64,000 nt of DNA from Mytilus californianus. Taxonomy: Eukaryota. Below the pieces are notes generated by a model. That model had not been told where the DNA came from. It searched no databases and worked only from the letters and a program-made list of their open reading frames with translations. The stretch spans positions 9,176,001 to 9,240,000 of the forward strand of contig NW_026262712.1 in assembly GCF_021869535.1 (NCBI RefSeq). Direction: 5' to 3'. Numbering within the stretch: position 1 is the stretch's first letter; each line of letters opens with the position of its first letter. The translations under genes were made by a program, and so were the position numbers. Positions 618-40,199 of the stretch are shown here, piece by piece.

Positions 618-3600
618 GAAAGCTTAAGTAATGCTTCTAATACTATAGAATTGACAATGAAATGTAAAATTTGTAAAGAAATCCATAGCTCTAAATCAGC
701 ATTAGAAAAGCACATGATCAGTGTACATAATACCAAATTGGGCCGTAAAAGATTTGGATGTAAACTTTGTACTCAATCTTTTGATACAACGTCTATTTTG
801 ATCAAACATATCGAATCGCACAAAGAGGAAAGAAAAAAAAGTGAAGAAAAAGGAAAGACAGAAACAGTCCAAACAAATAAAAGAGAAGGAAAAGGAAAGA
901 CAGAAACATTAGAAACAAAAACAAGAGAACAAAAAGGAAAGACAGAAGCAATAGAAAAAAAAATAAGAGAACAAAAAGGAAAGACAGAAACAAAAGAAAC
1001 AAAAACAAGAGAACAAAAAGGAAAGACAGAAACAGTGAAGATAAAAACAAGAGATCAAAAGGGAGAGACAGAAACAAAAATAAGAGAACATAAAGGAAAG
1101 ACAGAAACAAAAATAAGAGAACATAAAGGAAAGATAGAAACAGTAGAATCTAAAATAAGGAGAAAAAAATTGGCAATAAGTCATGTAAGTTACAAAAAGC
1201 AAGGAACAACCAAAATCACAGATAACATCATAAATTTCTATCTGAAGATGACTTGAACAGTGAAACAAGCTCAGTTATCATGACTCCGACATTTCCCGTG
1301 GAAAATACCGATGTAAACAAAAACTCTGAAAGAGATGTTTATAGAAAAAGTAAAAGAATGGAGGAAAGGAAAAAGAGCGAAGAGTCAGTAGTCGTGCCGA
1401 TTGATCCATCCCAGATCAAGACAGAACATCCTGACATCTTCGACATTGACTCCTTGGTCCATACTATTGATAGGAACTCTGAGATTTGTCCAAGGAAGTT
1501 CAATAGGTCGTACAGAGACATTGAAACAGAAATGATTATGACAGAAATTACTGGATCCCAGACTGGTTCCCCAGTTCAAAAAGAAACAGTTGTCAACATT
1601 AAAAAGGAGCCTAATAGTTCACCTATCAAAGGTTTGATGCAAATGGCAATGCAAAAAGGTTTAGAAGATAGTGACCAGTGGGGCAATTTCAGTGAATTTG
1701 ATATTGATAGTGTTGTTAATGTTGTCAATAGAAGAGACGAGGGGAGACAACTGGCAGATTGTCATGTAAATATTGTGAAAGTAGAAGACCAGGGGAGGCA
1801 ACTGGCTGATTGTCATGTAAATATTGTGAAAATAGAAGACCAAGGAAGGCAACTTGAAGATGGCATTGTAAATTTTGTGAATAGAGAAAACCATGGGAGA
1901 GAACTAGAAGATAGTAATATCACTATTGTGAAAGAAGAAATACAGGGGAGGCAACTAGAGGAAGAGGAATATTTACAGATGGATGATATTGAAGCTCTTG
2001 TTCATTATACAAATAGAAAATCGCATTCAGTCAGTCCTTCGAAGAACAATGCTTCTCAACAGCCATCATTGTCAGCTAAACCTAAAACAATTGTTGGCCT
2101 GCGACTGACAGATGACAACAAAGGAAGTAAATCTCCAAATAAAAAGGGAGATTACTCTTTATCATTATCACCACAAATGAAAAAGAACTATAAATTAAAA
2201 GACTGTTCTGTGGTTTTGGACACCGATAAAGACATTCAGTCTAAACTGCTGAATTAACAGAAAAATGCAGAGTCTGGAAAGGAAGACATGAACAGTAGTG
2301 TACATGTTTAAAGAAGTGGAGACATTTCTTATTTTAAGAATGTTGCAAAGAAACCCAAAATTGGTCCAAAATGCATGAAAAGACAAGACAAAGATGAAGT
2401 AAAAGATCACAAAAAGTCTAAATATGTTATTGACCACAAAGCCAAAGTTTTGAAACTGAATTTATCAAGGTTGGATAAAAATCTGGAAGCAAATGAGACT
2501 GATAAAGAGATTGAAAAAGAAGTGACAAAAAAGTTAGAAATTGAAAATGAAAGGAGAAAGGAGAAATCTCGTCCTAAACATGAGGAAAAATCTGAAAGTG
2601 AAAGTAAACCGACAAAAATTTCACTAGAGAATAAAGAAAAAGAAAGATAAAAAAATGAGAGTCGACATAAAAAATCTTCTACAGATGGAAATAGAAAATA
2701 GGACAAAAAACATGAAAATGACAGTCAGGAATATTCAGACAAACATAAACATTCTGAAAAACATAAACATCCGCATTCAGGAAAGCATACACATGGAATT
2801 TCAGAAAAACCTAAACATGGACAATCAGAGAAGCATAAACCTGGGAATGCAGAAAAGCATAAACATGGATATTCAGAAAAATCTGAACATGGATATTCAG
2901 AAAAATCTAAACATGGACAATCAGATAAGCATAAACATGGAAATTCAGAAAAGCATAAAGAAGTCAAAGGAGAAAATTCTGAAAAGTACAAGAATTTTCC
3001 TGATAAAAGTGGTTCCAAAAAAGGAGATGATGACAAGCAAATGAAATCATCAAAAAATGTAAAGAGGAAAGCAAATGAGACTGATAAAGAGATTGACAAA
3101 GAAGTGACAAAAAAGTTAGAAATTGAAAATGAAAGGAGAAAGGAGAAATCTCGTCCTATAAACATAAGGAAAAATCTGAAAGTGAAAGTAAACCGACAAA
3201 AATTTCAGTAGAGAATAAAGAAAAGGAAAGATCAGATAATGAGAGTCGACATATAAAATCTTCTACAGATGGAAATAGAAAACAGGACAGAAAACATGAA
3301 AATGACAGTCGGGAATATTCAGACAAACATAAACATTCAGAAAAACCTAAACATCCGCATTCAGGAAAGCATACGCATGGAATTTCAGAAAAACCTAAAC
3401 ATGGACAATCAGAGAAGCATAAACCTGGGAATTCAGAAAAGCATAAACATGGATATTCAGAAAAATCTGAACATGGATATTCAGAAAAATCTTAACATGG
3501 ACAATCAAATAAGCATAAACATGGAAATTCAGAAAAGCATAAAGAAGTCAAAGGAGAAAATTCTGAAAAGTACAAGAATTTTCCTGATAAAAGTGGTTCC

Positions 3601-3797
3601 AAAAAAGGAGATGATGACAAGCAAATGAAGAGGAAAACATTGCCAGTAAAAAGTCAAAGCAAGATGACAAAACTGAAAACTGTGACAAAAAGAAAGATTC
3701 CATAAAAAGACCTGAGACTGAAATGATATCTGTTGAGGTAAAGAAGAAAGAAAATGAAAAGGAAGAAAAACTGCATGAACCATCGAAGAAATTGGAG
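618..3797 (+). pseudogene. Representative unit: disrupted large exon encoding two C2H2 zinc fingers, KGKTETK(I/T)RE(Q/H) repeats, 17-aa GRQLADCHVNIVKVEDQ repeats and 8-aa KHGxSEKx repeats
   Basis: Consecutive ORF pieces 612..1256, 1253..2257 and 2375..2650 join by single frameshifts or stops into one long frame. Every unit has at least one stop or frameshift. Confidence 0.85.
663..821 (+). CDS. Tandem C2H2 zinc-finger pair (first copy; repeated in all 12 units)
   Basis: CKICKEIHSSKSALEKHMISVH (C-x2-C-x12-H-x4-H) and CKLCTQSFDTTSILIKHIESH (C-x2-C-x12-H-x3-H). Confidence 0.85.
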
Positions 3798-6700
3798 GAA
3801 AGCTTAAGTAATGCTTCTAATACTATAGAATTGACAATGAAATGTAAACTTTGTAAAGAAATCCATAGCTCTAAATCAGCATTAGAAAAGCACATGATCA
3901 GTGTACATAATACCAAATTGGGCCGTAAAAGATTTGGATGTAAACTTTGTACTCAATCTTTTGATACAACGTCTATTTTGATCAAACATATCGAATCGCA
4001 CAAAGAGGAAAGAAAAAAAAGTGAAGAAAAAGGAAAGACAGAAACAGTCCAAACAAATAAAAGAGAAGGAAAAGGAAAGACAGAAACATTAGAAACAAAA
4101 ACAAGAGAACAAAAAGGAAAGACAGAAACAATAGAAACAAAAATAAGAGAACAAAAAAGAAAGACAGAAACAAAAGAAACATAAACAAGAGAAGAAAAAG
4201 GAAAGACAGAAACAGTGAAAATAAAAACAAGAGAACAAAAGGGAGAGACAGAAACAAAAATAAGAGAACATAAAGGAAAGACAGAAACAAAAATAAGAGA
4301 ACATAAAGGAAAGATAGAAACAGTAGAATCTAAAATAAGGAGAAAAAAATTGGCAATAAGTCATGTAAGTTACAAAAAGCAAGGAACAACCAAAATCACA
4401 GATGACATCATAAATTTCTATCTGAAGATGACTTGAACAGTGAAACAAGCTCAGTTATCATGACTCCGACATTTCCCATGGAAAATACCGATGTAAACAA
4501 AAACTCTGAAAGAGATGTTTATAGAAAAAGTAAAAGAATGGAGGAAAGGAAAAAGAGCGAAGAGTCAGTAGTCGTGCCGATTGATCCATCCCAGATCAAG
4601 ACAGAACATCCTGACATCTTCGACATTGACTCCTTGGTCCATACTATTGATAGGAACTCTGAGATTTGTCCAAGGAAGTTCAATAGGTCGTACAGAGACA
4701 TTGAAACAGAAATGATTATGACAGAAATTACTGGATCCCAGACTGGTTCCCCAGTTCAAAAAGAAACAGTTGTCAACATTAAAAAGGAGCCTAATAGTTC
4801 ACCTATCAAAGGTTTGATGCAAATGGCAATGCAAAAAGGTTTAGAAGATAGTGACCAGTGGGGCAATTTCAGTGAATTTGATATTGATAGTGTTGTTAAT
4901 GTTGTCAATAGAAGAGACGAGGGGAGACAACTGGCAGATTGTCATGTAAATATTGTGAAAGTAGAAGACCAGGGGAGGCAACTGGCTGATTGTCATGTAA
5001 ATATTGTGAAAATAGAAGACCAAGGAAGGCAACTTGAAGATGGCATTGTAAATTTTGTGAATAGAGAAAACCATGGGAGAGAACTAGAAGATAGTAATAT
5101 CACTATTGTGAAAGAAGAAATACAGGGGAGGCAACTAGAGGAAGAGGAATATTTACAGATGGATGATATTGAAGCTCTTGTTCATTATACAAATAGAAAA
5201 TCGCATTCAGTCAGTCCTTCGAAGAACAATGCTTCTCAACAGCCATCATTGTCAGCTAAACCTAAAACAATTGTTGGCCTGCGACTGACAGATGACAACA
5301 AAGGAAGTAAATCTCCAAATAAAAAGGGAGATTACTCTTTATCATTATCACCACAAATGAAAAAGAACTATAAATTAAAAGACTGTTCTGTGGTTTTGGA
5401 CACCGATAAAGACATTCAGTCTAAACTGCTGAATTAACAGAAAAATGCAGAGTCTGGAAAGGAAGACATGAACAGTAGTGTACATGTTTAAAGAGAAGTG
5501 GAGACATTTCTTATTTTAAGAATGTTGCAAAGAAACCCAAAATTGGTCCAAAATGCATGAAAAGACAAGACAAAGATGAAGTAAAAGATCACAAAAAGTC
5601 TAAATATGTTATTGACCACAAAGCCAAAGTTTTGAAACTGAATTTATCAAGGTTGGATAAAAATCTGGAAGCAAATGAGACTGATAAAGAGATTGAAAAA
5701 GAAGTGACAAAAAAGTTAGAAATTGAAAATGAAAGGAGAAAGGAGAAATCTCGTCCTAAACATGAGGAAAAATCTGAAAGTGAAAGTAAACCGACAAAAA
5801 TTTCACTAGAGAATAAAGAAAAAGAAAGATAAAAAAATGAGAGTCGACATAAAAAATCTTCTACAGATGGAAATAGAAAATAGGACAAAAAACATGAAAA
5901 TGACAGTCAGGAATATTCAGACAAACATAAACATTCTGAAAAACATAAACATCCGCATTCAGGAAAGCATACACATGGAATTTCAGAAAAACCTAAACAT
6001 GGACAATCAGAGAAGCATAAACCTGGGAATGCAGAAAAGCATAAACATGGATATTCAGAAAAATCTGAACATGGATATTCAGAAAAATCTAAACATGGAC
6101 AATCAGATAAGCATAAACATGGAAATTCAGAAAAGCATAAAGAAGTCAAAGGAGAAAATTCTGAAAAGTACAAGAATTTTCCTGATAAAAGTGGTTCCAA
6201 AAAAGGAGATGATGACAAGCAAATGAAATCATCAAAAAATGTAAAGAGGAAAGCAAATGAGACTGATAAAGAGATTGACAAAGAAGTGACAAAAAAGTTA
6301 GAAATTGAAAATGAAAGGAGAAAGGAGAAATCTCGTCCTATAAACATAAGGAAAAATCTGAAAGTGAAAGTAAACCGACAAAAATTTCAGTAGAGAATAA
6401 AGAAAAGGAAAGATCAGATAATGAGAGTCGACATATAAAATCTTCTACAGATGGAAATAGAAAACAGGACAGAAAACATGAAAATGACAGTCGGGAATAT
6501 TCAGACAAACATAAACATTCAGAAAAACCTAAACATCCGCATTCAGGAAAGCATACGCATGGAATTTCAGAAAAACCTAAACATGGACAATCAGAGAAGC
6601 ATAAACCTGGGAATTCAGAAAAGCATAAACATGGATATTCAGAAAAATCTGAACATGGATATTCAGAAAAATCTTAACATGGACAATCAAATAAGCATAA

Positions 6701-9700
6701 ACATGGAAATTCAGAAAAGCATAAAGAAGTCAAAGGAGAAAATTCTGAAAAGTACAAGAATTTTCCTGATAAAAGTGGTTCCAAAAAAGGAGATGATGAC
6801 AAGCAAATGAAGAGGAAAACATTGCCAGTAAAAAGTCAAAGCAAGATGACAAAACTGAAAACTGTGACAAAAAGAAAGATTCCATAAAAAGACCTGAGAC
6901 TGAAATGATATCTGTTGAGGTAAAGAAGAAAGAAAATGAAAAGGAAGAAAAACTGCATGAACCATCGAAGAAATTGGAGGAAAGCTTAAGTAATGCTTCT
7001 AATACTATAGAATTGACAATGAAATGTAAACTTTGTAAAGAAATCCATAGCTCTAAATCAGCATTAGAAAAGCACATGATCAGTGTACATAATACCAAAT
7101 TGGGCCGTAAAAGATTTGGATGTAAACTTTGTACTCAATCTTTTGATACAACGTCTATTTTGATCAAACATATCGAATCGCACAAAGAGGAAAGAAAAAA
7201 AAGTGAAGAAAAAGGAAAGACAGAAACAGTCCAAACAAATAAAAGAGAAGGAAAAGGAAAGACAGAAACATTAGAAACAAAAACAAGAGAACAAAAAGGA
7301 AAGACAGAAACAATAGAAACAAAAATAAGAGAACAAAAAAGAAAGACAGAAACAAAAGAAACATAAACAAGAGAAGAAAAAGGAAAGACAGAAACAGTGA
7401 AAATAAAAACAAGAGAACAAAAGGGAGAGACAGAAACAAAAATAAGAGAACATAAAGGAAAGACAGAAACAAAAATAAGAGAACATAAAGGAAAGATAGA
7501 AACAGTAGAATCTAAAATAAGGAGAAAAAAATTGGCAATAAGTCATGTAAGTTACAAAAAGCAAGGAACAACCAAAATCACAGATGACATCATAAATTTC
7601 TATCTGAAGATGACTTGAACAGTGAAACAAGCTCAGTTATCATGACTCCGACATTTCCCATGGAAAATACCGATGTAAACAAAAACTCTGAAAGAGATGT
7701 TTATAGAAAAAGTAAAAGAATGGAGGAAAGGAAAAAGAGCGAAGAGTCAGTAGTCGTGCCGATTGATCCATCCCAGATCAAGACAGAACATCCTGACATC
7801 TTCGACATTGACTCCTTGGTCCATACTATTGATAGGAACTCTGAGATTTGTCCAAGGAAGTTCAATAGGTCGTACAGAGACATTGAAACAGAAATGATTA
7901 TGACAGAAATTACTGGATCCCAGACTGGTTCCCCAGTTCAAAAAGAAACAGTTGTCAACATTAAAAAGGAGCCTAATAGTTCACCTATCAAAGGTTTGAT
8001 GCAAATGGCAATGCAAAAAGGTTTAGAAGATAGTGACCAGTGGGGCAATTTCAGTGAATTTGATATTGATAGTGTTGTTAATGTTGTCAATAGAAGAGAC
8101 GAGGGGAGACAACTGGCAGATTGTCATGTAAATATTGTGAAAGTAGAAGACCAGGGGAGGCAACTGGCTGATTGTCATGTAAATATTGAGAAAATAGAAG
8201 ACCAAGGAAGGCAACTTGAAGATGGCATTGTAAATTTTGTGAATAGAGAAAACCATGGGAGAGAACTAGAAGATAGTAATATCACTATTGTGAAAGAAGA
8301 AATACAGGGGAGGCAACTAGAGGAAGAGGAATATTTACAGATGGATGATATTGAAGCTCTTGTTCATTATACAAATAGAAAATCGCATTCAGTCAGTCCT
8401 TCGAAGAACAATGCTTCTCAACAGCCATCATTGTCAGCTAAACCTAAAACAATTGTTGGCCTGCGACTGACAGATGACAACAAAGGAAGTAAATCTCCAA
8501 ATAAAAAGGGAGATTACTCTTTATCATTATCACCACAAATGAAAAAGAACTATAAATTAAAAGACTGTTCTGTGGTTTTGGACACCGATAAAGACATTCA
8601 GTCTAAACTGCTGAATTAACAGAAAAATGCAGAGTCTGGAAAGGAAGACATGAACAGTAGTGTACATGTTTAAAGAGAAGTGGAGACATTTCTTATTTTA
8701 AGAATGTTGCAAAGAAACCCAAAATTGGTCCAAAATGCATGAAAAGACAAGACAAAGATGAAGTAAAAGATCACAAAAAGTCTAAATTTGTTATTGACCA
8801 CAAAGCCAAAGTTTTGAAACTGAATTTATCAAGGTTGGATAAAAATCTGGAAGCAAATGAGACTGATAAAGAGATTGAAAAAGAAGTGACAAAAAAGTTA
8901 GAAATTGAAAATGAAAGGAGAAAGGAGAAATCTCGTCCTAAACATGAGGAAAAATCTGAAAGTGAAAGTAAACCGACAAAAATTTCACTAGAGAATAAAG
9001 AAAAAGAAAGATAAAAAAATGAGAGTCGACATAAAAAATCTTCTACAGATGGAAATAGAAAATAGGACAAAAAACATGAAAATGACAGTCAGGAATATTC
9101 AGACAAACATAAACATTCTGAAAAACATAAACATCCGCATTCAGGAAAGCATACACATGGAATTTCAGAAAAACCTAAACATGGACAATCAGAGAAGCAT
9201 AAACCTGGGAATGCAGAAAAGCATAAACATGGATATTCAGAAAAATCTGAACATGGATATTCAGAAAAATCTAAACATGGACAATCAGATAAGCATAAAC
9301 ATGGAAATTCAGAAAAGCATAAAGAAGTCAAAGGAGAAAATTCTGAAAAGTACAAGAATTTTCCTGATAAAAGTGGTTCCAAAAAAGGAGATGATGACAA
9401 GCAAATGAAATCATCAAAAAATGTAAAGAGGAAAGCAAATGAGACTGATAAAGAGATTGACAAAGAAGTGACAAAAAAGTTAGAAATTGAAAATGAAAGG
9501 AGAAAGGAGAAATCTCGTCCTATAAACATAAGGAAAAATCTGAAAGTGAAAGTAAACCGACAAAAATTTCAGTAGAGAATAAAGAAAAGGAAAGATCAGA
9601 TAATGAGAGTCGACATATAAAATCTTCTACAGATGGAAATAGAAAACAGGACAGAAAACATGAAAATGACAGTCGGGAATATTCAGACAAACATAAACAT

Positions 9701-12700
9701 TCAGAAAAACCTAAACATCCGCATTCAGGAAAGCATACGCATGGAATTTCAGAAAAACCTAAACATGGACAATCAGAGAAGCATAAACCTGGGAATTCAG
9801 AAAAGCATAAACATGGATATTCAGAAAAATCTGAACATGGATATTCAGAAAAATCTTAACATGGACAATCAAATAAGCATAAACATGGAAATTCAGAAAA
9901 GCATAAAGAAGTCAAAGGAGAAAATTCTGAAAAGTACAAGAATTTTCCTGATAAAAGTTGTTCCAAAAAAGGAGATGATGACAAGCAAATGAAGAGGAAA
10001 ACATTGCCAGTAAAAAGTCAAAGCAAGATGACAAAACTGAAAACTGTGACAAAAAGAAAGATTCCATAAAAAGACCTGAGACTGAAATGATATCTGTTGA
10101 GGTAAAGAAGAAAGAAAATAAAAAGGAAGAAAAACTGCATGAACCATCGAAGAAATTGGAGGAAAGCTTAAGTAATGCTTCTAATACTATAGAATTGACA
10201 ATGAAATGTAAACTTTGTAAAGAAATCCATAGCTCTAAATCAGCATTAGAAAAGCACATGATCAGTGTACATAATACCAAATTGGGCCGTAAAAGATTTG
10301 GATGTAAACTTTGTACTCAATCTTTTGATACAACGTCTATTTTGATCAAACATATCGAATCGCACAAAGAGGAAAGAAAAAAAAGTGAAGAAAAAGGAAA
10401 GACAGAAACAGTCCAAACAAATAAAAGAGAAGGAAAAGGAAAGACAGAAACATTAGAAACAAAAACAAGAGAACAAAAAGGAAAGACAGAAACAATAGAA
10501 ACAAAAATAAGAGAACAAAAAAGAAAGACAGAAACAAAAGAAACATAAACAAGAGAAGAAAAAGGAAAGACAGAAACAGTGAAAATAAAAACAAGAGAAC
10601 AAAAGGGAGAGACAGAAACAAAAATAAGAGAACATAAAGGAAAGACAGAAACAAAAATAAGAGAACATAAAGGAAAGATAGAAACAGTAGAATCTAAAAT
10701 AAGGAGAAAAAAATTGGCAATAAGTCATGTAAGTTACAAAAAGCAAGGAACAACCAAAATCACAGATGACATCATAAATTTCTATCTGAAGATGACTTGA
10801 ACAGTGAAACAAGCTCAGTTATCATGACTCCGACATTTCCCGTGGAAAATACCGATGTAAACAAAAACTCTGAAAGAGATGTTTATAGAAAAAGTAAAAG
10901 AATGGAGGAAAGGAAAAAGAGCGAAGAGTCAGTAGTCGTGCCGATTGATCCATCCCAGATCAAGACAGAACATCCTGACATCTTCGACATTGACTCCTTG
11001 GTCCATACTATTGATAGGAACTCTGAGATTTGTCCAAGGAAGTTCAATAGGTCGTACAGAGACATTGAAACAGAAATGATTATGACAGAAATTACTGGAT
11101 CCCAGACTGGTTCCCCAGTTCAAAAAGAAACAGTTGTCAACATTAAAAAGGAGCCTAATAGTTCACCTATCAAAGGTTTGATGCAAATGGCAATGCAAAA
11201 AGGTTTAGAAGATAGTGACCAGTGGGGCAATTTCAGTGAATTTGATATTGATAGTGTTGTTAATGTTGTCAATAGAAGAGACGAGGGGAGACAACTGGCA
11301 GATTGTCATGTAAATATTGTGAAAGTAGAAGACCAGGGGAGGCAACTGGCTGATTGTCATGTAAATATTGTGAAAATAGAAGACCAAGGAAGGCAACTTG
11401 AAGATGGCATTGTAAATTTTGTGAATAGAGAAAACCATGGGAGAGAACTAGAAGATAGTAATATCACTATTGTGAAAGAAGAAATACAGGGGAGGCAACT
11501 AGAGGAAGAGGAATATTTACAGATGGATGATATTGAAGCTCTTGTTCATTATACAAATAGAAAATCGCATTCAGTCAGTCCTTCGAAGAACAATGCTTCT
11601 CAACAGCCATCATTGTCAGCTAAACCTAAAACAATTGTTGGCCTGCGACTGACAGATGACAACAAAGGAAGTAAATCTCCAAATAAAAAGGGAGATTACT
11701 CTTTATCATTATCACCACAAATGAAAAAGAACTATAAATTAAAAGACTGTTCTGTGGTTTTGGACACCGATAAAGACATTCAGTCTAAACTGCTGAATTA
11801 ACAGAAAAATGCAGAGTCTGGAAAGGAAGACATGAACAGTAGTGTACATGTTTAAAGAGAAGTGGAGACATTTCTTATTTTAAGAATGTTGCAAAGAAAC
11901 CCAAAATTGGTCCAAAATGCATGAAAAGACAAGACAAAGATGAAGTAAAAGATCACAAAAAGTCTAAATTTGTTATTGACCACAAAGCCAAAGTTTTGAA
12001 ACTGAATTTATCAAGGTTGGATAAAAATCTGGAAGCAAATGAGACTGATAAAGAGATTGAAAAAGAAGTGACAAAAAAGTTAGAAATTGAAAATGAAAGG
12101 AGAAAGGAGAAATCTCGTCCTAAACATGAGGAAAAATCTGAAAGTGAAAGTAAACCGACAAAAATTTCACTAGAGAATAAAGAAAAAGAAAGATAAAAAA
12201 ATGAGAGTCGACATAAAAAATCTTCTACAGATGGAAATAGAAAATAGGACAGAAAACATGAAAATGACAGTCGGGAATATTCAGACAAACATAAACATTC
12301 TGAAAAACATAAACATCCGCATTCAGGAAAGCATACACATGGAATTTCAGAAAAACCTAAACATGGACAATCAGAGAAGCATAAACCTGGGAATGCAGAA
12401 AAGCATAAACATGGATATTCAGAAAAATCTGAACATGAAACATGGACAATCAGATAAGCATAAACATGGAAATTCAGAAAAGCATAAAGAAGTCAAAGGA
12501 GAAAATTCTGAAAAGTACAAGAATTTTCCTGATAAAAGTGGTTCCAAAAAAGGAGATGATGACAAGCAAATGAAATCATCAAAAAATGTAAAGAGGAAAG
12601 CAAATGAGACTGATAAAGAGATTGACAAAGAAGTGACAAAAAAGTTAGAAATTGAAAATGAAAGGAGAAAGGAGAAATCTCGTCCTATAAACATAAGGAA

Positions 12701-14864
12701 AAATCTGAAAGTGAAAGTAAACCGACAAAAATTTCAGTAGAGAATAAAGAAAAGGAAAGATCAGATAATGAGAGTCGACATATAAAATCTTCTACAGATG
12801 GAAATAGAAAACAGGACAGAAAACATGAAAATGACAGTCGGGAATATTCAGACAAACATAAACATTCAGAAAAACCTAAACATCCGCATTCAGGAAAGCA
12901 TACGCATGGAATTTCAGAAAAACCTAAACATGGACAATCAGAGAAGCATAAACCTGGGAATTCAGAAAAGCATAAACATGGATATTCAGAAAAATCTTAA
13001 CATGGACAATCAAATAAGCATAAACATGGAAATTCAGAAAAGCATAAAGAAGTCAAAGGAGAAAATTCTGAAAAGTACAAGAATTTTCCTGATAAAAGTG
13101 GTTCCAAAAAAGGAGATGATGACAAGCAAATGAAGAGGAAAACATTGCCAGTAAAAAGTCAAAGCAAGATGACAAAACTGAAAACTGTGACAAAAAGAAA
13201 GATTCCATAAAAAGACCTGAGACTAAAATGATATCTGTTGAGGTAAAGAAGAAAGAAAATAAAAAGGAAGAAAAACTGCATGAACCATCGAAGAAATTGG
13301 AGGAAAGCTTAAGTAATGCTTCTAATACTATAGAATTGACAATGAAATGTAAACTTTGTAAAGAAATCCATAGCTCTAAATCAGCATTAGAAAAGCACAT
13401 GATCAGTGTACATAATACCAAATTGGGCCGTAAAAGATTTGGATGTAAACTTTGTACTCAATCTTTTGATACAACGTCTATTTTGATCAAACATATCGAA
13501 TCGCACAAAGAGGAAAGAAAAAAAAGTGAAGAAAAAGGAAAGACAGAAACAGTCCAAACAAATAAAAGAGAAGGAAAAGGAAAGACAGAAACATTAGAAA
13601 CAAAAACAAGAGAACAAAAAGGAAAGACAGAAACAATAGAAACAAAAATAAGAGAACAAAAAAGAAAGACAGAAACAAAAGAAACATAAACAAGAGAAGA
13701 AAAAGGAAAGACAGAAACAGTGAAAATAAAAACAAGAGAACAAAAGGGAGAGACAGAAACAAAAATAAGAGAACATAAAGGAAAGACAGAAACAAAAATA
13801 AGAGAACATAAAGGAAAGATAGAAACGGTAGAATCTAAAATAAGGAGAGAAAAATTGGCAATAAGTCATGTAAGTGACAAAAAGGAAGGAACAACCAAAA
13901 TCACAGATGACATCAAAAAAATTTCTATCTGAAGATGACTTGAACAGTGAAACAAGCTCAGTTACTGGTATCATGACTCCGACATTTCCGGTTGCAAATA
14001 CCGATGTAAACAAAAACTCTGAAAGAGATATTTATAGAAAAAGTAAAAGAATGGAGGAAAGGAGAATCAGTAGTTGTGCCGATTGATCCATCCCAGATCA
14101 AGACAGAACATCCTGACATCTTTGACATTGACTCCTTGGTCCATACTATTAATAGGAACTGTGAGATTTGTCCAAGGAAGTTCAATAGGTCGTACAGAGA
14201 CATTGAAACAGAAATGATTATGACAGAAATTACTGGATCCCAGACTGGTTCCCCAGTTCAAAAAGAAACAGTTGTCAACATTAAAAAGGAGCCTAATAGT
14301 TCACCTATCAAAGGTTTGATGCAAATGGCAATGCAAAAAGGTTTAGAAGATAGTGACCAGTGGGGCGATTTCAGTGAATTTGATATTGATAGTGTTGTTA
14401 ATGTTGTCAATAGAAGAGACGAGGGGAGACAACTGGCAGATTGTCATGTAAATATTGTGAAAGTAGAAGACCAGGGGAGGCAACTGGCTGATTGTCATGT
14501 AAATATTGTGAAAATAGAAGACCAAGGAAGACAACTTGAAGATGGCATTGTAAATTTTGTGAATAGAGAAAACCATGGGAGAGAACTAGAAGATAGTAAT
14601 ATCACTATTGTGAAAGAAGAAATACAGGGGAGGCAACTAGAGGAAGAGGCATATTTACAGATGGATGATATTGAAGCTCTTGTTCATTATACAAATAGAA
14701 AATCGCATTCAGTCAGTCCTTCGAAGAACAATGCTTCTCAACAGCCATCATTGTCAGCTTAACCTAAAACAATTGTTGGCCTGCGATTGACAGATGACAA
14801 CAAAGGAAGTGAATCTCCAAATAAAAAGGGAGAAAACTCTTTATCATTATCACCAAAAATGAAA

Positions 14865-16780
14865 TAAAATGCTCCGCAGGGCGCAGCTTGATACGACCGC
14901 AGAGGTCGAACCCTGAACAGTTGGGGCAAGTATGGACACAACATTCAAGCTTGATACAGCTCTGAATTTGGATTGTGATTAAATATTTGACACAGCATAG
15001 GTTTCTGACACAGAATGAATGTGGTCTAAGAACTTAAAAATTTTTAAATTGGACATTCACCTATTATGGTCCAATATCCAAAATCTAAATACATGGAAAG
15101 ATTCAGCATATCAAAGAACCCCAAGAATTCAATTTTTGATGAAATCAAACAAAGTTTAATTTTGGACCCTTTTGACCTCAATGTGGACAAAGTTGAAAAC
15201 GGGGCCCAAAAATCAAAAATCTAAATACATGGTTAGATTCAGCATATCAAAGAACCCCATATATTCAATTTTTGTTGAAATCAAACAAAGTTTAATTTTG
15301 GACCCCGATTTGGACCAACTTGAAAACTGGGCCCATAATCAAAAATCTAAATACATGTTTAGATTCAGCATATCAAAGAACCCTAATAATTCAATTTTTT
15401 GTTAAAATCAAACTAAGTTTAATTTTGGACCCTTTGGACCTTAATGTAGACCAATTTGAAAACGGAACCAAAAATTAAGAATCTAAATACACGGTTAGAT
15501 TCGGCATATCAAAGAACCCCAATAATTCAATTTTTGATGAAATCAAACAAAGTTTAATTTTGGACCCTTTGGACCTCAATGTGGACCAATTTAAAAACGG
15601 GGCCCAAAATCCAAAAACTTAATACACGATTAGATTCAGCATATTAAAGAACCCCAAGAATTCAAGAATAAAACCCCATTGAAATTGATCAAGAAATAAG
15701 CAATTTATACGAAGTATCTTCTTTTGCACAATACTGTACAATTGACAATTTCTTGCTATTGCGCAATATTGTGCTATTGGATATTTCTTGCTATTGCGCA
15801 ATACTGTGCAATTGAAGATTTCTTGCTATTGCGCAATACTGTGCAATTGAAGATTTCTTGCTATTGTGCAATACTGTGCAATTGAAAATTTCTTGCTATT
15901 GCACAATACTTATTATATAATAATTTACACATCCTGTTTGGTGTGTATCTCCTACCATATCATTATTATTTACTTTTAAATATTAATCAGAAATAACCAA
16001 CTTAAAATGGAAAATTTTAAAAGAAAAAAAAAAGGAAAAAAAAGAAAAAAAAAGAAAAAAAAAAATCCCCCCCCCCCCAAACCCCTTATGATTCATCACC
16101 CCAAAACTCAATCCCAGCCTTCCCTTTGTGGTATGGTACCTTGCAGTACAATTTCAGAGAGATCCATACACTTGAACACAAGTTATTGTCTGGAAACTAG
16201 AAAAATGCTTATTTTTGGCCCCTTTTTGGCCCCCAATTCCTAAATGTTTCGGGCAATTACCCCCCAAACTCAATTCCAGCTTTCCCTTTGTGATATGGAA
16301 CCTTGTAGTACAATTTCAGAAATATCCAAACACTTACACACAAGTTATTGTCATGAAACTAGAAAAATGCTTGTTTTATGCCCCTTTTTTGGCCCCTAAT
16401 TCCTAAAATTTTGAGGCAATTACCCCCAAAATCAATTACAGCCTTCCCTTTGTGATATGGAACCGTGTAGTACAATGTCAGAGAGATCCATACACTTACA
16501 CACAAGTTATTGTCTGGAAGTTACAAAAATGCTCATTTTTGGCCCCTTTTTGGCCCCTTATTCCTTAACTGTTGGTACCATAACCCCCAAAATCAATCCC
16601 AACCTTCCTTTCGTGGTATTGAACATCATGGTAAAATTTCATGGAGATCCATTCACTTAAACTAAAGTTAGAGTGCGAAAACCAATGTGTCTTCGGACGA
16701 TGCCGGACGACGCCAGACGATGACGACGCCAACGTCATACCAATATACGACCAAAAAATTTTTAATTTTTGCGGTCGTAT
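14865..16780 (-). mobile_element. Non-autonomous Helentron-like element (HINE, family E, copy E1) inserted in unit 5
   Basis: Interrupts the unit in an A-run (ATGAAA|...|AAAAACTATA) with no long TSD. Subterminal inverted repeat ATACGACCGCA/TGCGGTCGTAT, palindromic 5' end, GC hairpin at the 3' end, a (GAC)n tract, and internal ~160-, ~35- and ~130-bp tandem arrays. Confidence 0.85.
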
Positions 16781-27757: not shown

Positions 27758-29755
27758 TAAAATGCTTCGCTGGGGCGCAGCTTGATACGACCGCAGAGGT
27801 CGAACCCTGAACAGTTGGGGCAAGTATGGACACAACATTCAAGCTTGATACAGCTCTGAATTTGGATGGTTATTAAATATTTGACACAGCATAGGTTTCT
27901 GACACAGAAAGAATGTGGTCTAAGAACTTCAATTTTTTTAATTTACCTATTATGGTCCAATGTCCAAAATCAAAATACATGGTTAGATTCAGCATATCAA
28001 AGAACCCCATATATTCAATTTTTGTTAAAATCAAACAAAGTTTAATTTTGGACCCCAACTTGGACAAACATGAAAACTTTGCCCATAATCAAAAATCTAA
28101 ACACATGTTTAGATTCAGCATATCAAAGAACCCCAAGAATTCAATTTTTGTTAGAATCAAACTAAGTTTAATTTTGGACCCTTTGAACCTTAATGTAGAC
28201 CAATTTAAAAAACAGGACCCAAAATTAAAAATCTAAATACACGGTTAGATTTAGAATATCAAAGAACCCCAATAATTCAATTTTAGATGAAATCAAACAA
28301 AGTTTAATTTTGGACCCTTTTGACCTCAATATGAACCAATTTGATAACGGGGTCCACAAATAAAAAATCTAAATACATGGTTAGATTCAGCATATCAAAA
28401 AACCCCATATATTCAATTTTTGTAGAAATCAAACAAAGTTTAATTTTGGACCCCAATTTGGACCAACTTGAAAACTGGGCCAAAAATCAAAAATCTAAAT
28501 ACATGTTTAGATTCAGCATATCAAAGAACCTCATATATTCAATTTTTGCTAAAATCAAACAAAGTTTAATTTTGGACCCTTTGGACCTTAATGTAGACCA
28601 ATTTGAAAACTGGACCCAAAATTAAAAATCTAAATACACTGTTAGATTCGGCATAACAAATAAATAAATGTGGTCAAAGATTTTACAAATCTAATGCGCC
28701 ATACTGTGCAATTAAAGATTACTTCTTGAAATTTTTCAATATTTGAAATTTGAAAAAAAAATAATACGTATTTGAAGAATATTTCTTTTTAATTTCTGAA
28801 ATCTGAAATGAGAAAAAATTGACCCCCCACAATTTCTTTTTATCCCCCCCTCCCACCTTTTTTCCCCCAAAAAATTCTTTCCCTCAAGATATAGTCATAA
28901 TCTCAATTCAAATTTCCAATGGAGTTGGCAACCATAATTACCCATTTAAATTTACCATAGTGCTAACTTAATCTATTTTATAATAGAATTAAAAATATAG
29001 TGTCAAATCTTTCATATGGATTTTTTTGTAACAAAAAAAAAGATGCAACATTTGCAGATATTTTTACTGGTCTTCCTTTATAAATATGCATTTCTTTAAA
29101 CATAATTTAAAAGCAGTGTAAGGGAAGTAACTAAAACGTTGTATTTGGATTACCTCCCTTACACTGTTTTAAATTATCTTTATTGTTCATTAACCATTAC
29201 TTTATACATAATTTAAAAGCAGTGTAAGGGAGATAATTTCAATGATGTATTTGATTTATCTCCCTTACACTGCTTTAAATTATGTTTTGTACTAAAGTAT
29301 TTGTCCATTAACCAGGACAACCTTGTTTTTCCCCCTTTTTTGCCCCAAATTCCTAAACGGTTTGAGCCATAACCCCCCAAAGCAAATCCTTACCATCCCT
29401 TTGTGGTATGGAAACTTGTAGTATAATTTCAGAGAGATCCATACACCGTTGCACAGTTATTGTCTGGAAACTAGAAAATGCTTATTTTTGGCCCCTTTTT
29501 GGCCCCTAATTCCTTAACTGTTGGTACCATAACCCCCAAAATCAATCCCAACCTTCCTTTTGTGGTATTTAACCTTATGGTCAAATTTCAAAAAGATCCA
29601 TTCACTTAAACTAAAGTTAGAGTGCGAAAACCAATGTGTATTCGGACGACGACGCTGGACGACGACGCCGGACGACGACGGCGACGCCGGACAACGACGA
29701 CGACGACGCCAACGTCATACCAATATAGGACCACAAAATTTTTTTGCGGTCGTAT
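27758..29755 (-). mobile_element. HINE family E, copy E2 (different interior) inserted in unit 9
   Basis: Interrupts CATAAGGAA|...|AAAAATCTGAAAG. Same termini as E1, with a (GAC)n tract and ~130-bp repeats, but a distinct middle section. Confidence 0.85.
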
Positions 29756-32700: not shown

Positions 32701-35700
32701 ATATTCAGAAAAATCTAAACATGGACAATCAGATAAGCATAAACATGGAAATTCAGAAAAGCATAAAGAAGTCAAAGGAGAAAATTCCAAAAAAGTAGAA
32801 GAATTTTCCTGATAAAAGAGGTTCCAAAAAAGGAGATGATGACAAGCAAATAAAATCACCAAAAAATCTAAAGAGGAAAGCAAATGAAGAGGAAAACATT
32901 GCCAGTAAAAAGTCAAAGCACGATGACAAAACTGAAAACTGTGACGAAAAGAAAGATTCCATAAAAAGACCTGAGACTAAAATGATATCTGTTGAGGTAA
33001 AGAAGAAAGAAAATAAAAAGGAAGAAAAACTGCATGAACCATCGAAGAAATTGGAGGAAAGCTTAAGTAATGCTTCTAATACTATAGAATTGACAATGAA
33101 ATGTAAACTTTGTAAAGAAATCCATAGCTCTAAATCAGCATTAGAAAAGCACATGATCAGTGTACATAATACCAAATTGGGCCGTAAAAGATTTGGATGT
33201 AAACTTTGTACTCAATCTTTTGATACAACGTCTATTTTGATCAAACATATCGAATCGCACAAAGAGGAAAGAAAAAAAAGTGGTGAAGAAAAAGGAAAGA
33301 CAGAAACAGTCCAAACAAATAAAAGAGAAGGAAACGGAAAGACAGAAACATTAGAAACAAAAACAAGAGAACAAAAAGGAAAGACAGAAACAATAGAAAC
33401 AAAAATAAGAGAACAAAAAAGAAAGACAGAAACAAAAGAAACAAAAACAAGAGAAGAAAAAGGAAAGACAGAAACAGTGAAAATAAAAACAAGAGAACAA
33501 AAGGGAGAGACAGAAACAAAAATAAGAGAACATAAAGGAAAGACAGAAACAAAAATAAGAGAACATAAAGGAAAGATAGAAACAGTAGAATCTAAAATAA
33601 GGAGAGAAAAATTGGCAATAAGTCATGTAAGTGACAAAAAGGAAGGAACAACCAAAATCACAGATGACATCAAAAATTTCTATCTGAAGATGACTTGAAC
33701 AGTGAAACAAGCTCAGTTACTGGTATCATGACTCCGACATTTCCGGTGGCAAATACCGATGTAAACAAAAACTCTGAAAGAGATATTTATAGAAAAAGTA
33801 AAAGAATGGAGGAAAGGAGAATCAGTAGTTGTGCCGATTGATCCATCCCAGATCAAGACAGAACATCCTGACATCTTTGACATTGACTCCTTGGTCCATA
33901 CTATTAATAGGAACTGTGAGATTTGTCCAAGGAAGTTCAATAGGTCGTACAGAGACATTGAAACAGAAATGATTATGACAGAAATTACTGGATCCCAGAC
34001 TGGTTCCCCAGTTCAAAAAGAAACAGTTGTCAACATTAAAAAGGAGCCTAATAGTTCACCTATCAAAGGTTTGATGCAAATGGCAATGCAAAAAGGTTTA
34101 GAAGATAGTGACCAGTGGGGCAATTTCAGTGAATTTGATATTGATAGTGTTGTTAATGTTGTCAATAGAAGAGATGAGGGGAGACAACTGGCAGATTGTC
34201 ATGTAAATATTGTGAAAGTAGAAGACCAGGCGAGGCAACTGGCTGATTGTCATGTAAATATTGTGAAAATAGAAGACCAAGGAAGACAACTTGAAGATGG
34301 CATTGTAAATTTTGTGAATAGAGAAAACCATGGGAGAGAACTAGAAGATAGTAATATCACTATTGTGAAAGAAGAAATACAGGGGAGGCAACTAGAGGAA
34401 GAGGCATATTTACAGATGGATGATATTGAAGCTCTTGTTCATTATACAAATAGAAAATCGCATTCAGTCAGTCCTTCGAAGAACAATGCTTCTCAACAGC
34501 CATCATTGTCAGCTTAACCTAAAACAATTGTTGGCCTGCGATTGACAGATGACAACAAAGGAAGTGAATCTCCAAATAAAAAGGGAGATAGCTCTTTATC
34601 ATTATCACCAAAAATGAAAAAACTATAAATTAAAAGACTGTTCTGTGGTTTTGGACACCGATAAAGACATTCAGTCTAAACTGCTGAATTTACAGAAAAA
34701 TGCAGAGTCTGGAAAGAAAGACATGAACAGTAGTGGACATGATTTAAAGAGAAGTGGAGACATTTCTTATTTTAAAAATGTTGCAAAGAAACCCAAAATT
34801 GGTCCAAAATGCATGAAAAGACAAGACAAAGATGAAGTAAAAGATCACAAAAAGTCTAAATTTGTTATTGACCATAAAGCCAAAGTTTTGAAACTGAATT
34901 TATCAAGGTTGGATAAAAATCTGGAAGCAAATGAGACTGATAAAGAGATTGACAAAGAAGTGACAAAAAAGTTAGAAATTATAAATGAAAGGAGAAAGGA
35001 GAAATCTCGTCCTAAACATAAGGAAAAATCTGAAAGTGAAAGTAAGTGACAAAAATTTCAGTAGAGAATAAAGAAAAAGAAAGATCAGATAATGAGAGTC
35101 GACATATAAAATCTTCTACAGATGGAAATAGAAAACAGGACAGAAAACATGAAAATGACAGTCGGGAATATTCAGACAAACATAAACATTCAGAAAAACC
35201 TAAACATCCGCATTCAGAAAAGCATACGCATGGAATTTCAGAAAAACCTTAACATGGCCAATCAGAGAAGCATAAACCTGGGAATTCAGAAAAGCATAAA
35301 CATAGATATTCAGAAAAATCTAAACATGGATATTCAGAAAAATCTAAACATGGACAATCAGATAAGCATAAACATGGAAATTCAGAAAAGCATAAAGAAG
35401 TCAAAGGAGAAAATTCCAAAAAAGTACAAGAATTTTCCTGATAAAAGAGGTTCCAAAAAAGGAGATGATGACAAGCAAATAAAATCACCAAAAAATCTAA
35501 AGAGGAAAGCAAATGAAGAGGAAAACATTGCCAGTAAAAAGTCAAAGCACGATGACAAAACTGAAAACTGTGACGAAAAGAAAGATTCCATAAAAAGACC
35601 TGAGACTAAAATGATATCTGTTGAGGTAAAGAAGAAAGAAAATAAAAAGGAAGAAAAACTGCATGAACCATCGAAGAAATTGGAGGAAAGCTTAAGTAAT

Positions 35701-38314
35701 GCCTCTAATACTATAGAATTGACAATGAAATGTAAACTTTGTAAAGAAATCCATAGCTCTAAATCAGCATTAGAAAAGCACATGATCAGTGTACATAATA
35801 CCAAATTGGGCCGTAAAAGATTTGGATGTAAACTTTGTACTCAATCTTTTGATACAACGTCTATTTTGATCAAACATATCGAATCGCACAAAGAGGAAAG
35901 AAAAAAAAGTGGTGAAGAAAAAGGAAAGACAGAAACAGTCCAAACAAATAAAAGAGAAGGAAACGGAAAGACAGAAACATTAGAAACAAAAACAAGAGAA
36001 CAAAAAGGAAAGACAGAAACAATAGAAACAAAAATAAGAGAACAAAAAAGAAAGACAGAAACAAAAGAAACAAAAACAAGAGAAGAAAAAGGAAAGACAG
36101 AAACAGTGAAAATAAAAACAAGAGAACAAAAGGGAGAGACAGAAACAAAAATAAGAGAACATAAAGGAAAGACAGAAACAAAAATAAGAGAACATAAAGG
36201 AAAGATAGAAACAGTAGAATCTAAAATAAGGAGAGAAAAATTGGCAATAAGTCATGTAAGTGACAAAAAGGAAGGAACAACCAAAATCACAGATGACATC
36301 AAAAATTTCTATCTGAAGATGACTTGAACAGTGAAACAAGCTCAGTTACTGGTATCATGACTCCGACATTTCCGGTGGCAAATACCGATGTAAACAAAAA
36401 CTCTGAAAGAGATATTTATAGAAAAAGTAAAAGAATGGAGGAAAGGAGAATCAGTAGTTGTGCCGATTGATCCATCCCAGATCAAGACAGAACATCCTGA
36501 CATCTTTGACATTGACTCCTTGGTCCATACTATTAATAGGAACTGTGAGATTTGTCCAAGGAAGTTCAATAGGTCGTACAGAGACATTGAAACAGAAATG
36601 ATTATGACAGAAATTACTGGATCCCAGACTGGTTCCCCAGTTCAAAAAGAAACAGTTGTCAACATTAAAAAGGAGCCTAATAGTTCACCTATCAAAGGTT
36701 TGATGCAAATGGCAATGCAAAAAGGTTTAGAAGATAGTGACCAGTGGGGCAATTTCAGTGAATTTGATATTGATAGTGTTGTTAATGTTGTCAATAGAAG
36801 AGATGAGGGGAGACAACTGGCAGATTGTCATGTAAATATTGTGAAAGTAGAAGACCAGGCGAGGCAACTGGCTGATTGTCATGTAAATATTGTGAAAATA
36901 GAAGACCAAGGAAGACAACTTGAAGATGGCATTGTAAATTTTGTGAATAGAGAAAACCATGGGAGAGAACTAGAAGATAGTAATATCACTATTGTGAAAG
37001 AAGAAATACAGGGGAGGCAACTAGAGGAAGAGGCATATTTACAGATGGATGATATTGAAGCTCTTGTTCATTATACAAATAGAAAATCGCATTCAGTCAG
37101 TCCTTCGAAGAACAATGCTTCTCAACAGCCATCATTGTCAGCTTAACCTAAAACAATTGTTGGCCTGCGATTGACAGATGACAACAAAGGAAGTGAATCT
37201 CCAAATAAAAAGGGAGATAACTCTTTATCATTATCACCAAAAATGAAAAAACTAAAAATTAAAAGACTGTTCTGTGGTTTTGGACACCGATAAAGACATT
37301 CAGTCTAAACTGCTGAATTTACAGAAAAATGCAGAGTCTGGAAAGAAAGACATGAACAGTAGTGTACATGATTTAAAGAGAAGTGGAGACATTTCTTATT
37401 TTAAAAATGTTGCAAAGAAACCCAAAATTGGTCCAAAATGCATGAAAAGACAAGACAAAGATGAAGTAAAAGATCACAAAAAGTCTAAATTTGTTATTGA
37501 CCATAAAGCCAAAGTTTTGAAACTGAATTTATCAAGGTTGGATAAAAATCTGGAAGCAAATGAGACTGATAAAGAGATTGACAAAGAAGTGACAAAAAAG
37601 TTAGAAATTATAAATGAAAGGAGAAAGGAGAAATCTCGTCCTAAACATAAGGAAAAATCTGAAAGTGAAAGTAAGTGACAAAAATTTCACTAGAGAATAA
37701 AGAAAAAGAAAGATCAGATAATGAGAGTCGACATATAAAATCTTCTACAGATGGAAATAGAAAACAGGACAGAAAACATGAAAATGACAGTCGGGAATAT
37801 TCAGACAAACATAAACATTCAGAAAAACCTAAACATCCGCATTCAGAAAAGCATACGCATGGAATTTCAGAAAAACCTAAACAAGGCCAATCAGAGAAGC
37901 ATAAACCTGGGAATTCAGAAAAGCATAAACATAGATATTCAGAAAAATCTAAACATGGATATTCAGAAAAATCTAAACATGGACAATCAGATAAGCATAA
38001 ACATGGAAATTCAGAAAAGCATAAAGAAGTCAAAGGAGAAAATTCCAAAAAAGTACAAGAATTTTCCTGATAAAAGAGGTTCCAAAAAAGGAGATGATGA
38101 CAAGCAAATAAAATCACCAAAAAATCTAAAGAGGAAAGCAAATGAAGAGGAAAACATTGCCAGTAAAAAGTCAAAGCAAGATGACAAAACTGAAAACTGT
38201 GACGAAAAGAAAGATTCCATAAAAAGACCTGAGACTAAAATGATATCTGTTGAGGTAAAGAAGAAAGAAAATAAAAAGGAAGAAAAACTGCATGAACCAT
38301 CGAAGAAATTGGAG

Positions 38315-38320
38315 GTAGGT
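38315..38320 (+). other. 5' splice donor ending the array exon (phase 0)
   Basis: TTG GAG|GTAGGT. Array homology stops here and T-rich intron-like DNA follows. It is in phase with the exon at 40091. Confidence 0.7.
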
Positions 38321-38363
38321 GTTGTTTCATTTTCTATTCTATTGCATCATTCACACATTCATG

Positions 38364-38490
38364 TAGTTCGTTTCTATGTAAGTTGGAGTTTGTTTTTGTT
38401 GCACTTCAGTATTTCTTTTGTAACCCGGATTTGTTTTCTCTCAATCAATTTATGACTTTTGAACAGCAGTATACTACTGTTGCCTATATT
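38364..38490 (+). repeat. Degraded copy of the 3' tail of the Penelope-like element family
   Basis: GTAACCCGGATTTG...GAACAGCAGTATACTACTGTTGCCTATATT matches the reverse complement of 61591-61760. Confidence 0.7.
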
Positions 38491-38616
38491 CCTGGATTTC
38501 AGCAATTTAACATGGCGTGTCACTCCTTAGTTACGACATATCAACTGTGGATTTGACAGTAAATAGCCAACGAAAAAAATATTTGGATTAAGAATTATAA
38601 GGATTGAACACATTTT

Positions 38617-39604: not shown

Positions 39605-39620
39605 ATTTCTAGTGGTTATT

Positions 39621-39900
39621 TAAGAAATAATTCATGCAAGCCTTGGATTTATTTGAAATTTTTAGCTTTTATCTTACAGGGGGTAAAATAGAACTGCAAT
39701 ACACAAGGCAATCTTACCTTCACTTCAGTTTTTCAAATAACCATATTTGTCTAGTTAGAATCGAAATAATTCATGCAAGCTATAGATTTGTTATCATTTT
39801 CACATGGCCTGTGGCTAACGCTCGAGATAAAATTAAATCATAACGGCCAGGCCGTGTGAAAATTTCCAACAAATCTATGGCTTGCATGAATTATTTCTTA
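39621..39900. mobile_element. TA-flanked MITE with an internal foldback
   Basis: TA|AGAAATAATTCATGCAAGCC ... GGCTTGCATGAATTATTTCT|TA. A second left-end copy at ~39783 forms a ~115-bp imperfect palindrome with the right end. Confidence 0.75.
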
Positions 39901-40090
39901 ATTATATTATATGTCCAACCACGTAAACTTGTTTATGTTTTTGTCAACAAATGATGGTTGATCTAATCTTGACCTTTTAGTTGATGCCATTTAAAATGAC
40001 AGGGATTATGACATCTAACCTACCTTGTGTATAAATATATATATAAATATGACCTTTTTATGATCATAATTTACATAAATGTATTTACAG

Positions 40091-40199
40091 ATTTTTAGCA
40101 GTTGTTTGGTAACTAATACATCACCAGATTCAGATGACGAACTGGAAGATTTAGGTCTGCAGGAATTGCCTGAAAATACACCAAGATATATCACACACT
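40091..40199 (+). CDS. Internal coding exon (phase 0 to 1), acidic low-complexity peptide IFSSCLVTNTSPDSDDELEDLGLQELPENTPRYITH
   Basis: TTTACAG acceptor, GTGAGT donor, and an open frame in phase with the donor at 38315. Confidence 0.7.

Follow-up and report, generated by a model that had tools for sequence, protein, structure and literature searches.

Tandem arrays are usually explained by DNA slippage and unequal exchange alone. In the D4Z4/DUX4 macrosatellite, each unit is a complete intronless gene with its own start and stop, and in the kringle IV-2 array of LPA, an exon repeat that lies within a gene, the units keep their introns and each copy is spliced. Circular RNA (circRNA)-derived pseudogenes are dispersed retrocopies at other loci, which bear the hallmarks of retrotransposition and have a known parent circle (Dong et al. 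2016, PMC4897178), and reverse-transcriptase-mediated intron loss has been modeled as cDNA (complementary DNA) recombination (PMC2614967). Here, we describe a ~40-kb array that lies largely in a 64-kb window of the Mytilus californianus genome (JAKFGE010000006.1:9176001-9240000, which contains 0 N letters) and show that it consists of 13 copies of one internal 2.0-kb exon, named B, from an orphan M. californianus gene (RefSeq LOC127706963, LOC127706965). On balance, we lean toward an origin in which a B-A-B founder, where A is a 604-nucleotide (nt) linker, was made from spliced RNA, was expanded by unequal crossing-over and is now decaying neutrally.

The window was joined to 23.5 kb of upstream DNA (L002) and 62 kb of downstream DNA (L001) to form a 150-kb supercontig, on which units were mapped by blastn with the last unit as query; positions are those of the window, continued in both directions. 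The array has the formula B(AB)12, that is, 13 B copies and 12 A linkers on the + strand with no introns between them, and over the whole array B exceeds A by one. The 3′ end of the first B (B0), which has no A before it, occupies positions 1-617, with its start outside the window at -1384 (L002:22101). Twelve A+B units follow, and these fall into two types by length, alignment and blastn: units 1-4 (618-13302; 3141-3182 bp, or 3.14-3.18 kb) and units 5-12 (13303-38315; 2629-2643 bp without insertions, or 2.63-2.64 kb), the latter consisting of ~604 nt of A and then ~2.03 kb of B at 99-99.9% identity to one another. Units 1-4 carry an additional internal duplication of ~0.58 kb in the 24-bp-repeat region of B, which encodes SEKHKHG-type His/Lys/Ser repeats; the corresponding alignment columns (6212-6795) are confined to these four units, and query positions 1869-2460 match twice in each of them by blastn. 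With transposon insertions excluded, units range from 2629 to 3182 nt and are 97-99.9% identical (99-99.9% within a length type and ~97.5% between types), differing from each other by indels of 1, 2 and 11 nt. In the last unit, A spans 35686-36289 (604 nt, phase 0 to 1, delimited by Pfam, translation and its occurrence in arrays only), and B spans 36290-38315, the copy that retains a 5′ splice site (delimited by homology to B0, the donor and the RefSeq proteins XP_052067662-4).

All 12 internal joints read AAATTGGAG|GAAAGCTTAAGT with 0 mismatches, where 0 such joints are expected in shuffled sequence, and the junction translates in a single frame as ...EPSKKLE|ESLSNASNTIELTMKCKLC... (KKLE|ESLSNAS). 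An earlier description made from the letters alone, hereafter the sequence-only reading, had reported these unit boundaries, a last unit that ends in the same GAG followed by GTAGGT, and an in-frame junction, and all three are borne out. The last unit ends AAATTGGAG and is followed at 38316 by GTAGGTGTTG, placing GAG|GTAGGT across 38315/38316. The same GAG|GTAGGT forms the right end of arrays 1, 2 and 3 (array 1 being the one described here, and the others its sister arrays, see below), and this donor is used in RefSeq models. The GAG that precedes GTAGGT at the array end is the GAG that precedes A inside the array, which makes the correspondence exact on the B side.

At the other end, the array begins ~605 nt into the unit as it was originally described. 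Its start at -1384 lies behind a polypyrimidine-CAG acceptor, and the blastn match of the first copy runs from unit offset ~619 (window -1372) to 617. B0 is directly preceded by ...ttttattttaattttttcag, and its acceptor reads cag|GTGATGAT at L002:22101. When the starts of all four arrays were aligned, each showed a long T-rich tract ending in cag (ttttttcag|) and then GTGATGATACAGAATTTC; the sequence that follows the acceptor, GTGATGATACAGAATTTCTATCTGAGGATGAC, translates to (G/C)DDTEFLSEDD. The equivalent A|B site inside the arrays reads ...ACCAAAATCACAGATGACATCAAAAATTTCTATCTGAAGATGAC. Homology among B copies is certain from AATTTC, 12 nt into the exon, and probable from GATGA, which begins at its nt 3. 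The phase of B is 1 at its start and 0 at its end; the B|A join is exact and in frame, and the A|B join, 2-12 nt away from the acceptor, keeps the frame as far as GAT GAC. These results show that the first B retains the acceptor of the gene and the last B its donor.

This layout bears directly on the origin put forward in the sequence-only reading, namely that the unit is one phase 0-0 exon that was back-spliced into a circle, reverse-transcribed as a concatemer and then expanded. That model accounts for the right boundary at a donor, for the in-frame junction and for a consensus unit of ~881 open codons. Its own check was to look for an acceptor directly ahead of GAAAGCTTAAGT where the array begins, however, and inspection of the upstream DNA revealed that the acceptor precedes B, ~605 nt further in, and that GAAAGCTTAAGT opens the separate segment A, so one unit is not one exon. 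All four arrays start at this internal point with the acceptor before B and not A, and the excess of B over A is not predicted by a circle of one exon. We therefore find this origin scarcely credible. The broader proposal of an RNA-based founder fares differently: the array 5′ end refutes a single-exon circle, whereas an origin from an RNA of two segments is viable.

To describe the ancestral unit, we built a majority consensus from 22 copies (18 full units and the four B0 copies). The consensus B is open for 677 codons, that is, over its entire length, compared with a mean longest open reading frame (ORF) of 67 codons and a maximum of 151 in composition-matched shuffles, and the consensus A is open for 213 codons from its start. 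The sole break is a homopolymer slip, 8-14 nt into B, that shifts the frame; the copies have 5 or 7 A's there, homopolymer lengths being those of a single assembly. A run of 6 A's at this position makes a unit of 2643 nt (881 codons) that is free of stops, as is a tandem pair of such units. GAT GAC in the frame of A and GAT GAT in the frame of B0 both encode DD, which indicates that the A|B joint itself is in frame. These results show that the ancestral unit was a real coding sequence of ~881 codons, with a frame that, one homopolymer step aside, ran through both junctions.

The present copies are broken. Every unit has at least 24 stops in each frame, unit lengths are mostly not multiples of 3 and exactly one unit is 2640 nt long, so the 880-codon exon of the sequence-only reading does not hold for the units as they stand. 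The longest open stretch is 343 codons wholly within a unit and 405 codons across a junction. Every B copy carries 2-9 frameshift indels and 1-5 nonsense codons, and this includes the four B0 copies, which we had considered as candidates for intact exons. Counted over unique substitution events, the ratio of non-synonymous to synonymous substitution rates (dN/dS) is ~0.95 for B, and A gives 1.0-1.4, values that do not improve on those of the wrong frames. Of 76 indel events, 54 (71%) shift the frame. Purifying selection confined to older substitutions was rejected as well, variants shared by at least 4 copies being 20 synonymous versus 45 non-synonymous, a weak hint. Thus, in a test for a giant repetitive exon, neither a frame open through the copies nor purifying selection was found. 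These data show that every copy has decayed neutrally since founding and that the array is a pseudo-exon macrosatellite rather than a working giant exon.

RNA and protein annotation could nonetheless be taken as signs of a working coding macrosatellite, which today would serve as a giant exon or a spliced set of exons for a long, repetitive zinc-finger protein. Reads from a stranded RNA run covered A and B without a break, at a depth of ~50-130 summed over ~22 copies; first mates fell on the minus strand, which shows that RNA from the locus is of the + strand. Several RefSeq proteins are also predicted here. Frameshifts and stops in every copy, a dN/dS of ~1 and transposon insertions in two units all speak against a working protein, however, as do the RefSeq proteins themselves, which at 219-580 amino acids (aa) are mutually inconsistent fragments starting from internal methionines. 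We regard this reading as very improbable. In the same run, depth was 8.7 in the unique intron just before exon X, the exon that follows the array, and 15.5 over X, each summed over 3-4 copies, and no enrichment of the kind expected of a mature exon was seen over the array. Contigs from three independent runs with three organism labels bridge the B|A junction, which is therefore not an assembly artefact; in a second run search, A and the junction were present under four organism labels and absent under a fifth, from which we draw no date. The B|A junction exists in the genome of the RNA runs used, and reads across it are thus uninformative on back-splicing.

Three sister arrays of the form B(AB)n lie on L001, as mapped by blastn: array 2 at 78907-88540 (start by blastn 78919), array 3 at 103186-110610 (103198) and array 4 at 115173-120235 (115185). 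Array 4 was shortened by a deletion that extends from A into the end of exon X. Homology between the flanks of the four arrays reaches from ~1.7 kb ahead of B0 (near window -3100, the block boundary) to ~2.4 kb beyond exon X, so the four arrays are copies of one block (array plus X), which is repeated four-fold as a higher-order tandem repeat. A tree of all B copies groups the B0 copies of arrays 1, 3 and 4 together and apart from the internal copies, which group by array. The clustering of B0 implies that B0-A-B is older than the multiplication of the block, and that each array has been homogenised or expanded separately since. Under parsimony, the tree also suggests that there was one B position at the locus when the founder arose.

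Both ends of B thus lie at, or within a few nucleotides of, splice sites throughout the array, and the B-A-B founder was therefore most likely copied from spliced RNA, by the same logic that underlies cDNA-mediated intron loss (PMC2614967) and circRNA-derived pseudogenes (PMC4897178). In the proposed founder step, cDNA of a spliced RNA would have recombined with its own gene to yield B-A-B. The template could have been non-colinear (a two-segment circle, a trans-spliced RNA or an exon-repeated RNA) or linear, in the latter case an mRNA from a B-A-B arrangement of exons that was later lost. Unequal crossing-over would later have multiplied the (AB) units, and the whole block would have been duplicated to four copies. 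Because the array has one more B than A, a model of tandem duplication through DNA alone needs a B-A-B start too. With such a start, the founding event must have duplicated one exon exactly, within 2-12 nt of the acceptor through to the donor, and a 604-nt in-frame coding segment of the right phase must have landed between the copies. The sequence-only reading had argued that a random breakpoint is unlikely to match a splice site, and this argument is strengthened now that the left end of the array is an acceptor and the right end a donor spliced in RefSeq; ends of this kind are very unlikely to arise from random breakpoints, with rough odds of ~12/2000 on the left times ~1/1000 on the right. 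Splicing yields such joints routinely, which favours a founder made from spliced RNA.

The main rival is precise intron deletion at the DNA level from a lost B-A-B arrangement. In its fuller form, either an older B-intron-A-intron-B lost both introns through microhomology-mediated end joining or a replication template switch duplicated B with A as copied filler, and unequal crossing-over followed. Precise intron loss free of RNA has been reported in metazoans (PMC3698931), and this locus does rearrange at the DNA level, as the four-fold block duplication, the 0.58-kb internal duplication and the deletion in array 4 attest; retrotransposition hallmarks are also absent. Such an origin nevertheless requires two exact deletions or breakpoints at exon borders plus a 604-nt in-frame coding filler, no trace of the supposed introns or of a separate A exon was detected in the 150 kb, and the tree points to B having had one position at the time B0-A-B arose. 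We consider a DNA-only origin possible but doubtful.

Within the preferred account of an RNA-copied founder, nothing speaks specifically for circular RNA ahead of a trans-spliced or exon-repeated transcript, or ahead of a lost B-A-B arrangement that shed its introns. The narrower proposal is that a non-colinear RNA (a two-segment back-spliced A-B circle or an exon-repeated trans-spliced transcript) was copied into DNA, possibly by reverse transcription rolling around the circle, and that this copy founded the array by recombining into exon B of its own gene; on present evidence this is unlikely. If true, it would mean that circular or trans-spliced RNA gave rise to a macrosatellite in situ, and no description of tandem DNA formed by this route was found in the literature searched.

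Several observations weigh against an RNA-copied founder of either kind. The left edge of the repeated exon is resolved to no better than 2-12 nt from the acceptor, and RefSeq models are what supports use of the donor at 38315; the splice from 38315 to 40091 is not among the joints listed for the RNA run, which is evidence neither way. Per copy, the array and the flanking intron have about the same RNA depth. No present copy, nor the consensus, has the A-to-B junction in frame. A stand-alone A exon is absent from the 150 kb examined, and two protein searches found no close relative of A. Hallmarks of retrotransposition (a poly(A) tail or target-site duplication) are absent at either end of the array, which lies in situ. 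Lastly, precise intron loss is possible at the DNA level via microhomology (PMC3698931).

We looked for the source of A in several ways. A occurs solely between B copies, and sensitive blastn and tblastn searches of the 150 kb with arrays masked returned only chance matches, which disposes of flanking introns or nearby DNA as its origin. Derivation of A as an enlarged copy of exon X was likewise rejected, local alignments of both ends and of the whole being no better than shuffles (p 0.6-0.99). Protein searches with HMMER (1.84 billion representatives) and with a word-indexed method (residues 186-275) recovered only generic C2H2 proteins at ~29-35% identity. A encodes two C2H2 fingers, then six 42-bp KTET repeats and then ...KITDD; the fingers, at 35731-35889, match Pfam zf-C2H2_4 (E=4.4e-6) and zf-C2H2 (E=7e-4), and both fit C-x2-C-x12-H-x3/4-H in translation. 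A predicted GT donor, GAAAGCTTAA|GTAATG, lies 10 nt into A (35695/35696) at the same place in every unit, and a 580-aa RefSeq model skips from it to AG sites within B.

A Pfam scan of all B pieces found no domain. Each unit contains, at a corresponding position (36800-37020 in the last unit), four copies of a 51-bp (17-aa) repeat, GRQLADCHVNIVKVEDQ; this repeat and the adjacent sequence contain many psi-K-x-E motifs (IKTE, IKKE, VKVE, VKIE, VKEE) that resemble the SUMOylation consensus. A search for B orthologues with the protein P0001 returned only M. californianus models and one Logan transcript that shares just a motif of exon X. No B homologue was found outside M. californianus in protein searches, and no orthologue came out of them that could be compared as an intron-containing ancestor.

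A HMMER scan with the 405-aa junction-spanning open stretch identified RefSeq proteins of M. californianus. Three isoforms of LOC127706963, XP_052067662-4, join the last B to exon X and read ...KKLE|IFSSCLVTNTSPDSDDELEDLGLQELPENTPRYITHC|DDTEFLPEDDL..., with IFSSC...ITHC between the joints. Their first exon is the tail of the last unit (37955-38315, + strand), their second is exon X (match at 40085-40204, + strand, by tblastn with P0001 residues 119-158 at 95% identity) and their third, by locus mapping, is the first B of array 4. Exon X itself (40091-40199, + strand; 109 nt, phase 0 to 1), delimited by tblastn and flanking splice signals, has the borders tttacag|ATTTTTAGC...ACACACT|gtgagt and encodes IFSSCLVTNTSPDSDDELEDLGLQELPENTPRYITH(C). 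The lengths of A (604 nt) and X (109 nt) each leave a remainder of 1 on division by 3, which allows either segment to join one B exon to another without a change of frame. Further copies of X follow array 2 (near 89327) and array 3 (near 111084), and a partial copy lies at 120234. A 78% identical match to the acidic exon-X motif (CLVT.TSPDSDDELEDLGLQELPEN) is present in P0160, a 453-aa ORF from a Logan transcript that is otherwise unrelated and bears KLLKIYDSCLVTSTSPDSDDELEDLGLQELPENAPKYATY in a different context, which suggests that exon X was borrowed from, or shares ancestry with, another gene.

A second gene model, LOC127706965, connects the array to DNA upstream. Its protein, XP_052067667, reads MSRDG|DDTEF..., a junction by which this model uses the B0 acceptor. 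The first exon of this model is the end of an exon for a nuclear-receptor DNA-binding domain, and the model begins at an internal methionine of that exon. The exon encodes the second zinc finger of the domain (GFFRR...|gtaagt) and lies at L002:9872-10001 (window -13613 to -13484) on the + strand. No follow-on receptor exon with the VRFGR motif was found in the next 140 kb, and the arrays may lie in a long intron of the receptor gene, or the LOC127706965 model may be a chimaera. The two remaining models, XP_052065794 ('ATRX homolog', 219 aa) and the 580-aa 'DDB_G0271982' protein, are short fragments from internal methionines. In all, the seven RefSeq proteins from four gene models (LOC127706963 X1-X4, LOC127706965, 'ATRX homolog' and 'DDB_G0271982') are fragments of decaying units, and annotations at this locus should be read with that warning in mind.

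The receptor exon raises the further alternative that the array is a piece of a longer (AB)n open-frame array which landed in the intron of an upstream nuclear-receptor gene, its splice-like flanks being chance matches adopted by the gene predictor. The DNA-binding exon does share the strand of the array, whose start is 12 kb further downstream, RNA depth per copy is intron-like, and B lacks a homologue outside M. californianus in protein searches. Against this, the left end coincides exactly with a long polypyrimidine tract plus CAG and the right end with AG|GTAGGT, the phases match both exon X and the upstream exon, and exon X has canonical splice sites of its own and a relative in another transcript. 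We judge a landed fragment improbable.

Two units bear transposon insertions, delimited by alignment gaps and blastn, within B: one of 1.9 kb in unit 5 (14868-16780, + strand), which starts TAAAATGCTCCGC and ends GCGGTCGTAT, and one of 2.0 kb in unit 9 (27761-29755, + strand). These are independent insertions of one ~2-kb family, which starts (A)TAAAATGCTYCGC, ends GCGGTCGTAT and contains internal tandem repeats of 136, 35 and 162 bp; other members lie on the minus strand at 54070-56288 and 42753-46266 (including 44926-46266). The post-array intron (38316-40090, + strand), which begins GTAGGT, holds a very high-copy, transposon-like repeat at 38417-39607 that includes a 166-bp tandem array (38688-39524). 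Summed contig depth over this repeat, which is not a copy number, reaches hundreds of thousands in DNA-like runs, and read ends accumulate at 38417 and 39607.

With both ends and its internal joints at splice sites, this array is a concrete, datable candidate for a macrosatellite that started from an RNA template inside a gene. Should sister species turn out to have the pre-array state, the locus could reveal whether non-colinear RNAs (circles, exon repetition) are able to return to the genome other than by an insertion of the retrotransposon style. The array also illustrates how fast coding arrays decay, with ~881 codons open in the ancestor and no intact copy now.

The locus shares features with each of the systems considered at the outset. 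With 12 full tandem units of 2.6-3.2 kb at 97-99.9% identity, it falls within the definition of a macrosatellite (tandem units of at least 1-2 kb at high identity), and it resembles D4Z4/DUX4 in its kilobase-scale, high-identity units, in expansion by unequal exchange and in a coding sequence thought to be RNA-derived. Unlike in D4Z4/DUX4, the Mytilus unit combines an internal exon with a linker and lacks its own start and stop; its frame once ran from unit to unit, and all copies are broken. As in LPA kringle IV-2, internal coding exons were multiplied in tandem within one gene, but the Mytilus array is intronless between copies. With circRNA-derived pseudogenes it shares the diagnostic idea of an exon 3′ end joined in DNA, without an intron and exactly at the splice site, to out-of-order sequence (PMC4897178), the join being exact here on the B side; the Mytilus copies, however, are tandem and lie within the parent gene between its own acceptor and donor, they lack a poly(A) tail and target-site duplication, and A has no known exon of origin. 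The likeness to cDNA-mediated intron loss (PMC2614967) extends to precise in-frame fusion of exons within the gene at former splice sites with the frame kept, to neighbouring junctions that were apparently converted together and to the absence of retrotransposition scars. Exon order and copy number are normally unchanged in that process, whereas the Mytilus product repeats one exon and grew into a 13-copy macrosatellite.

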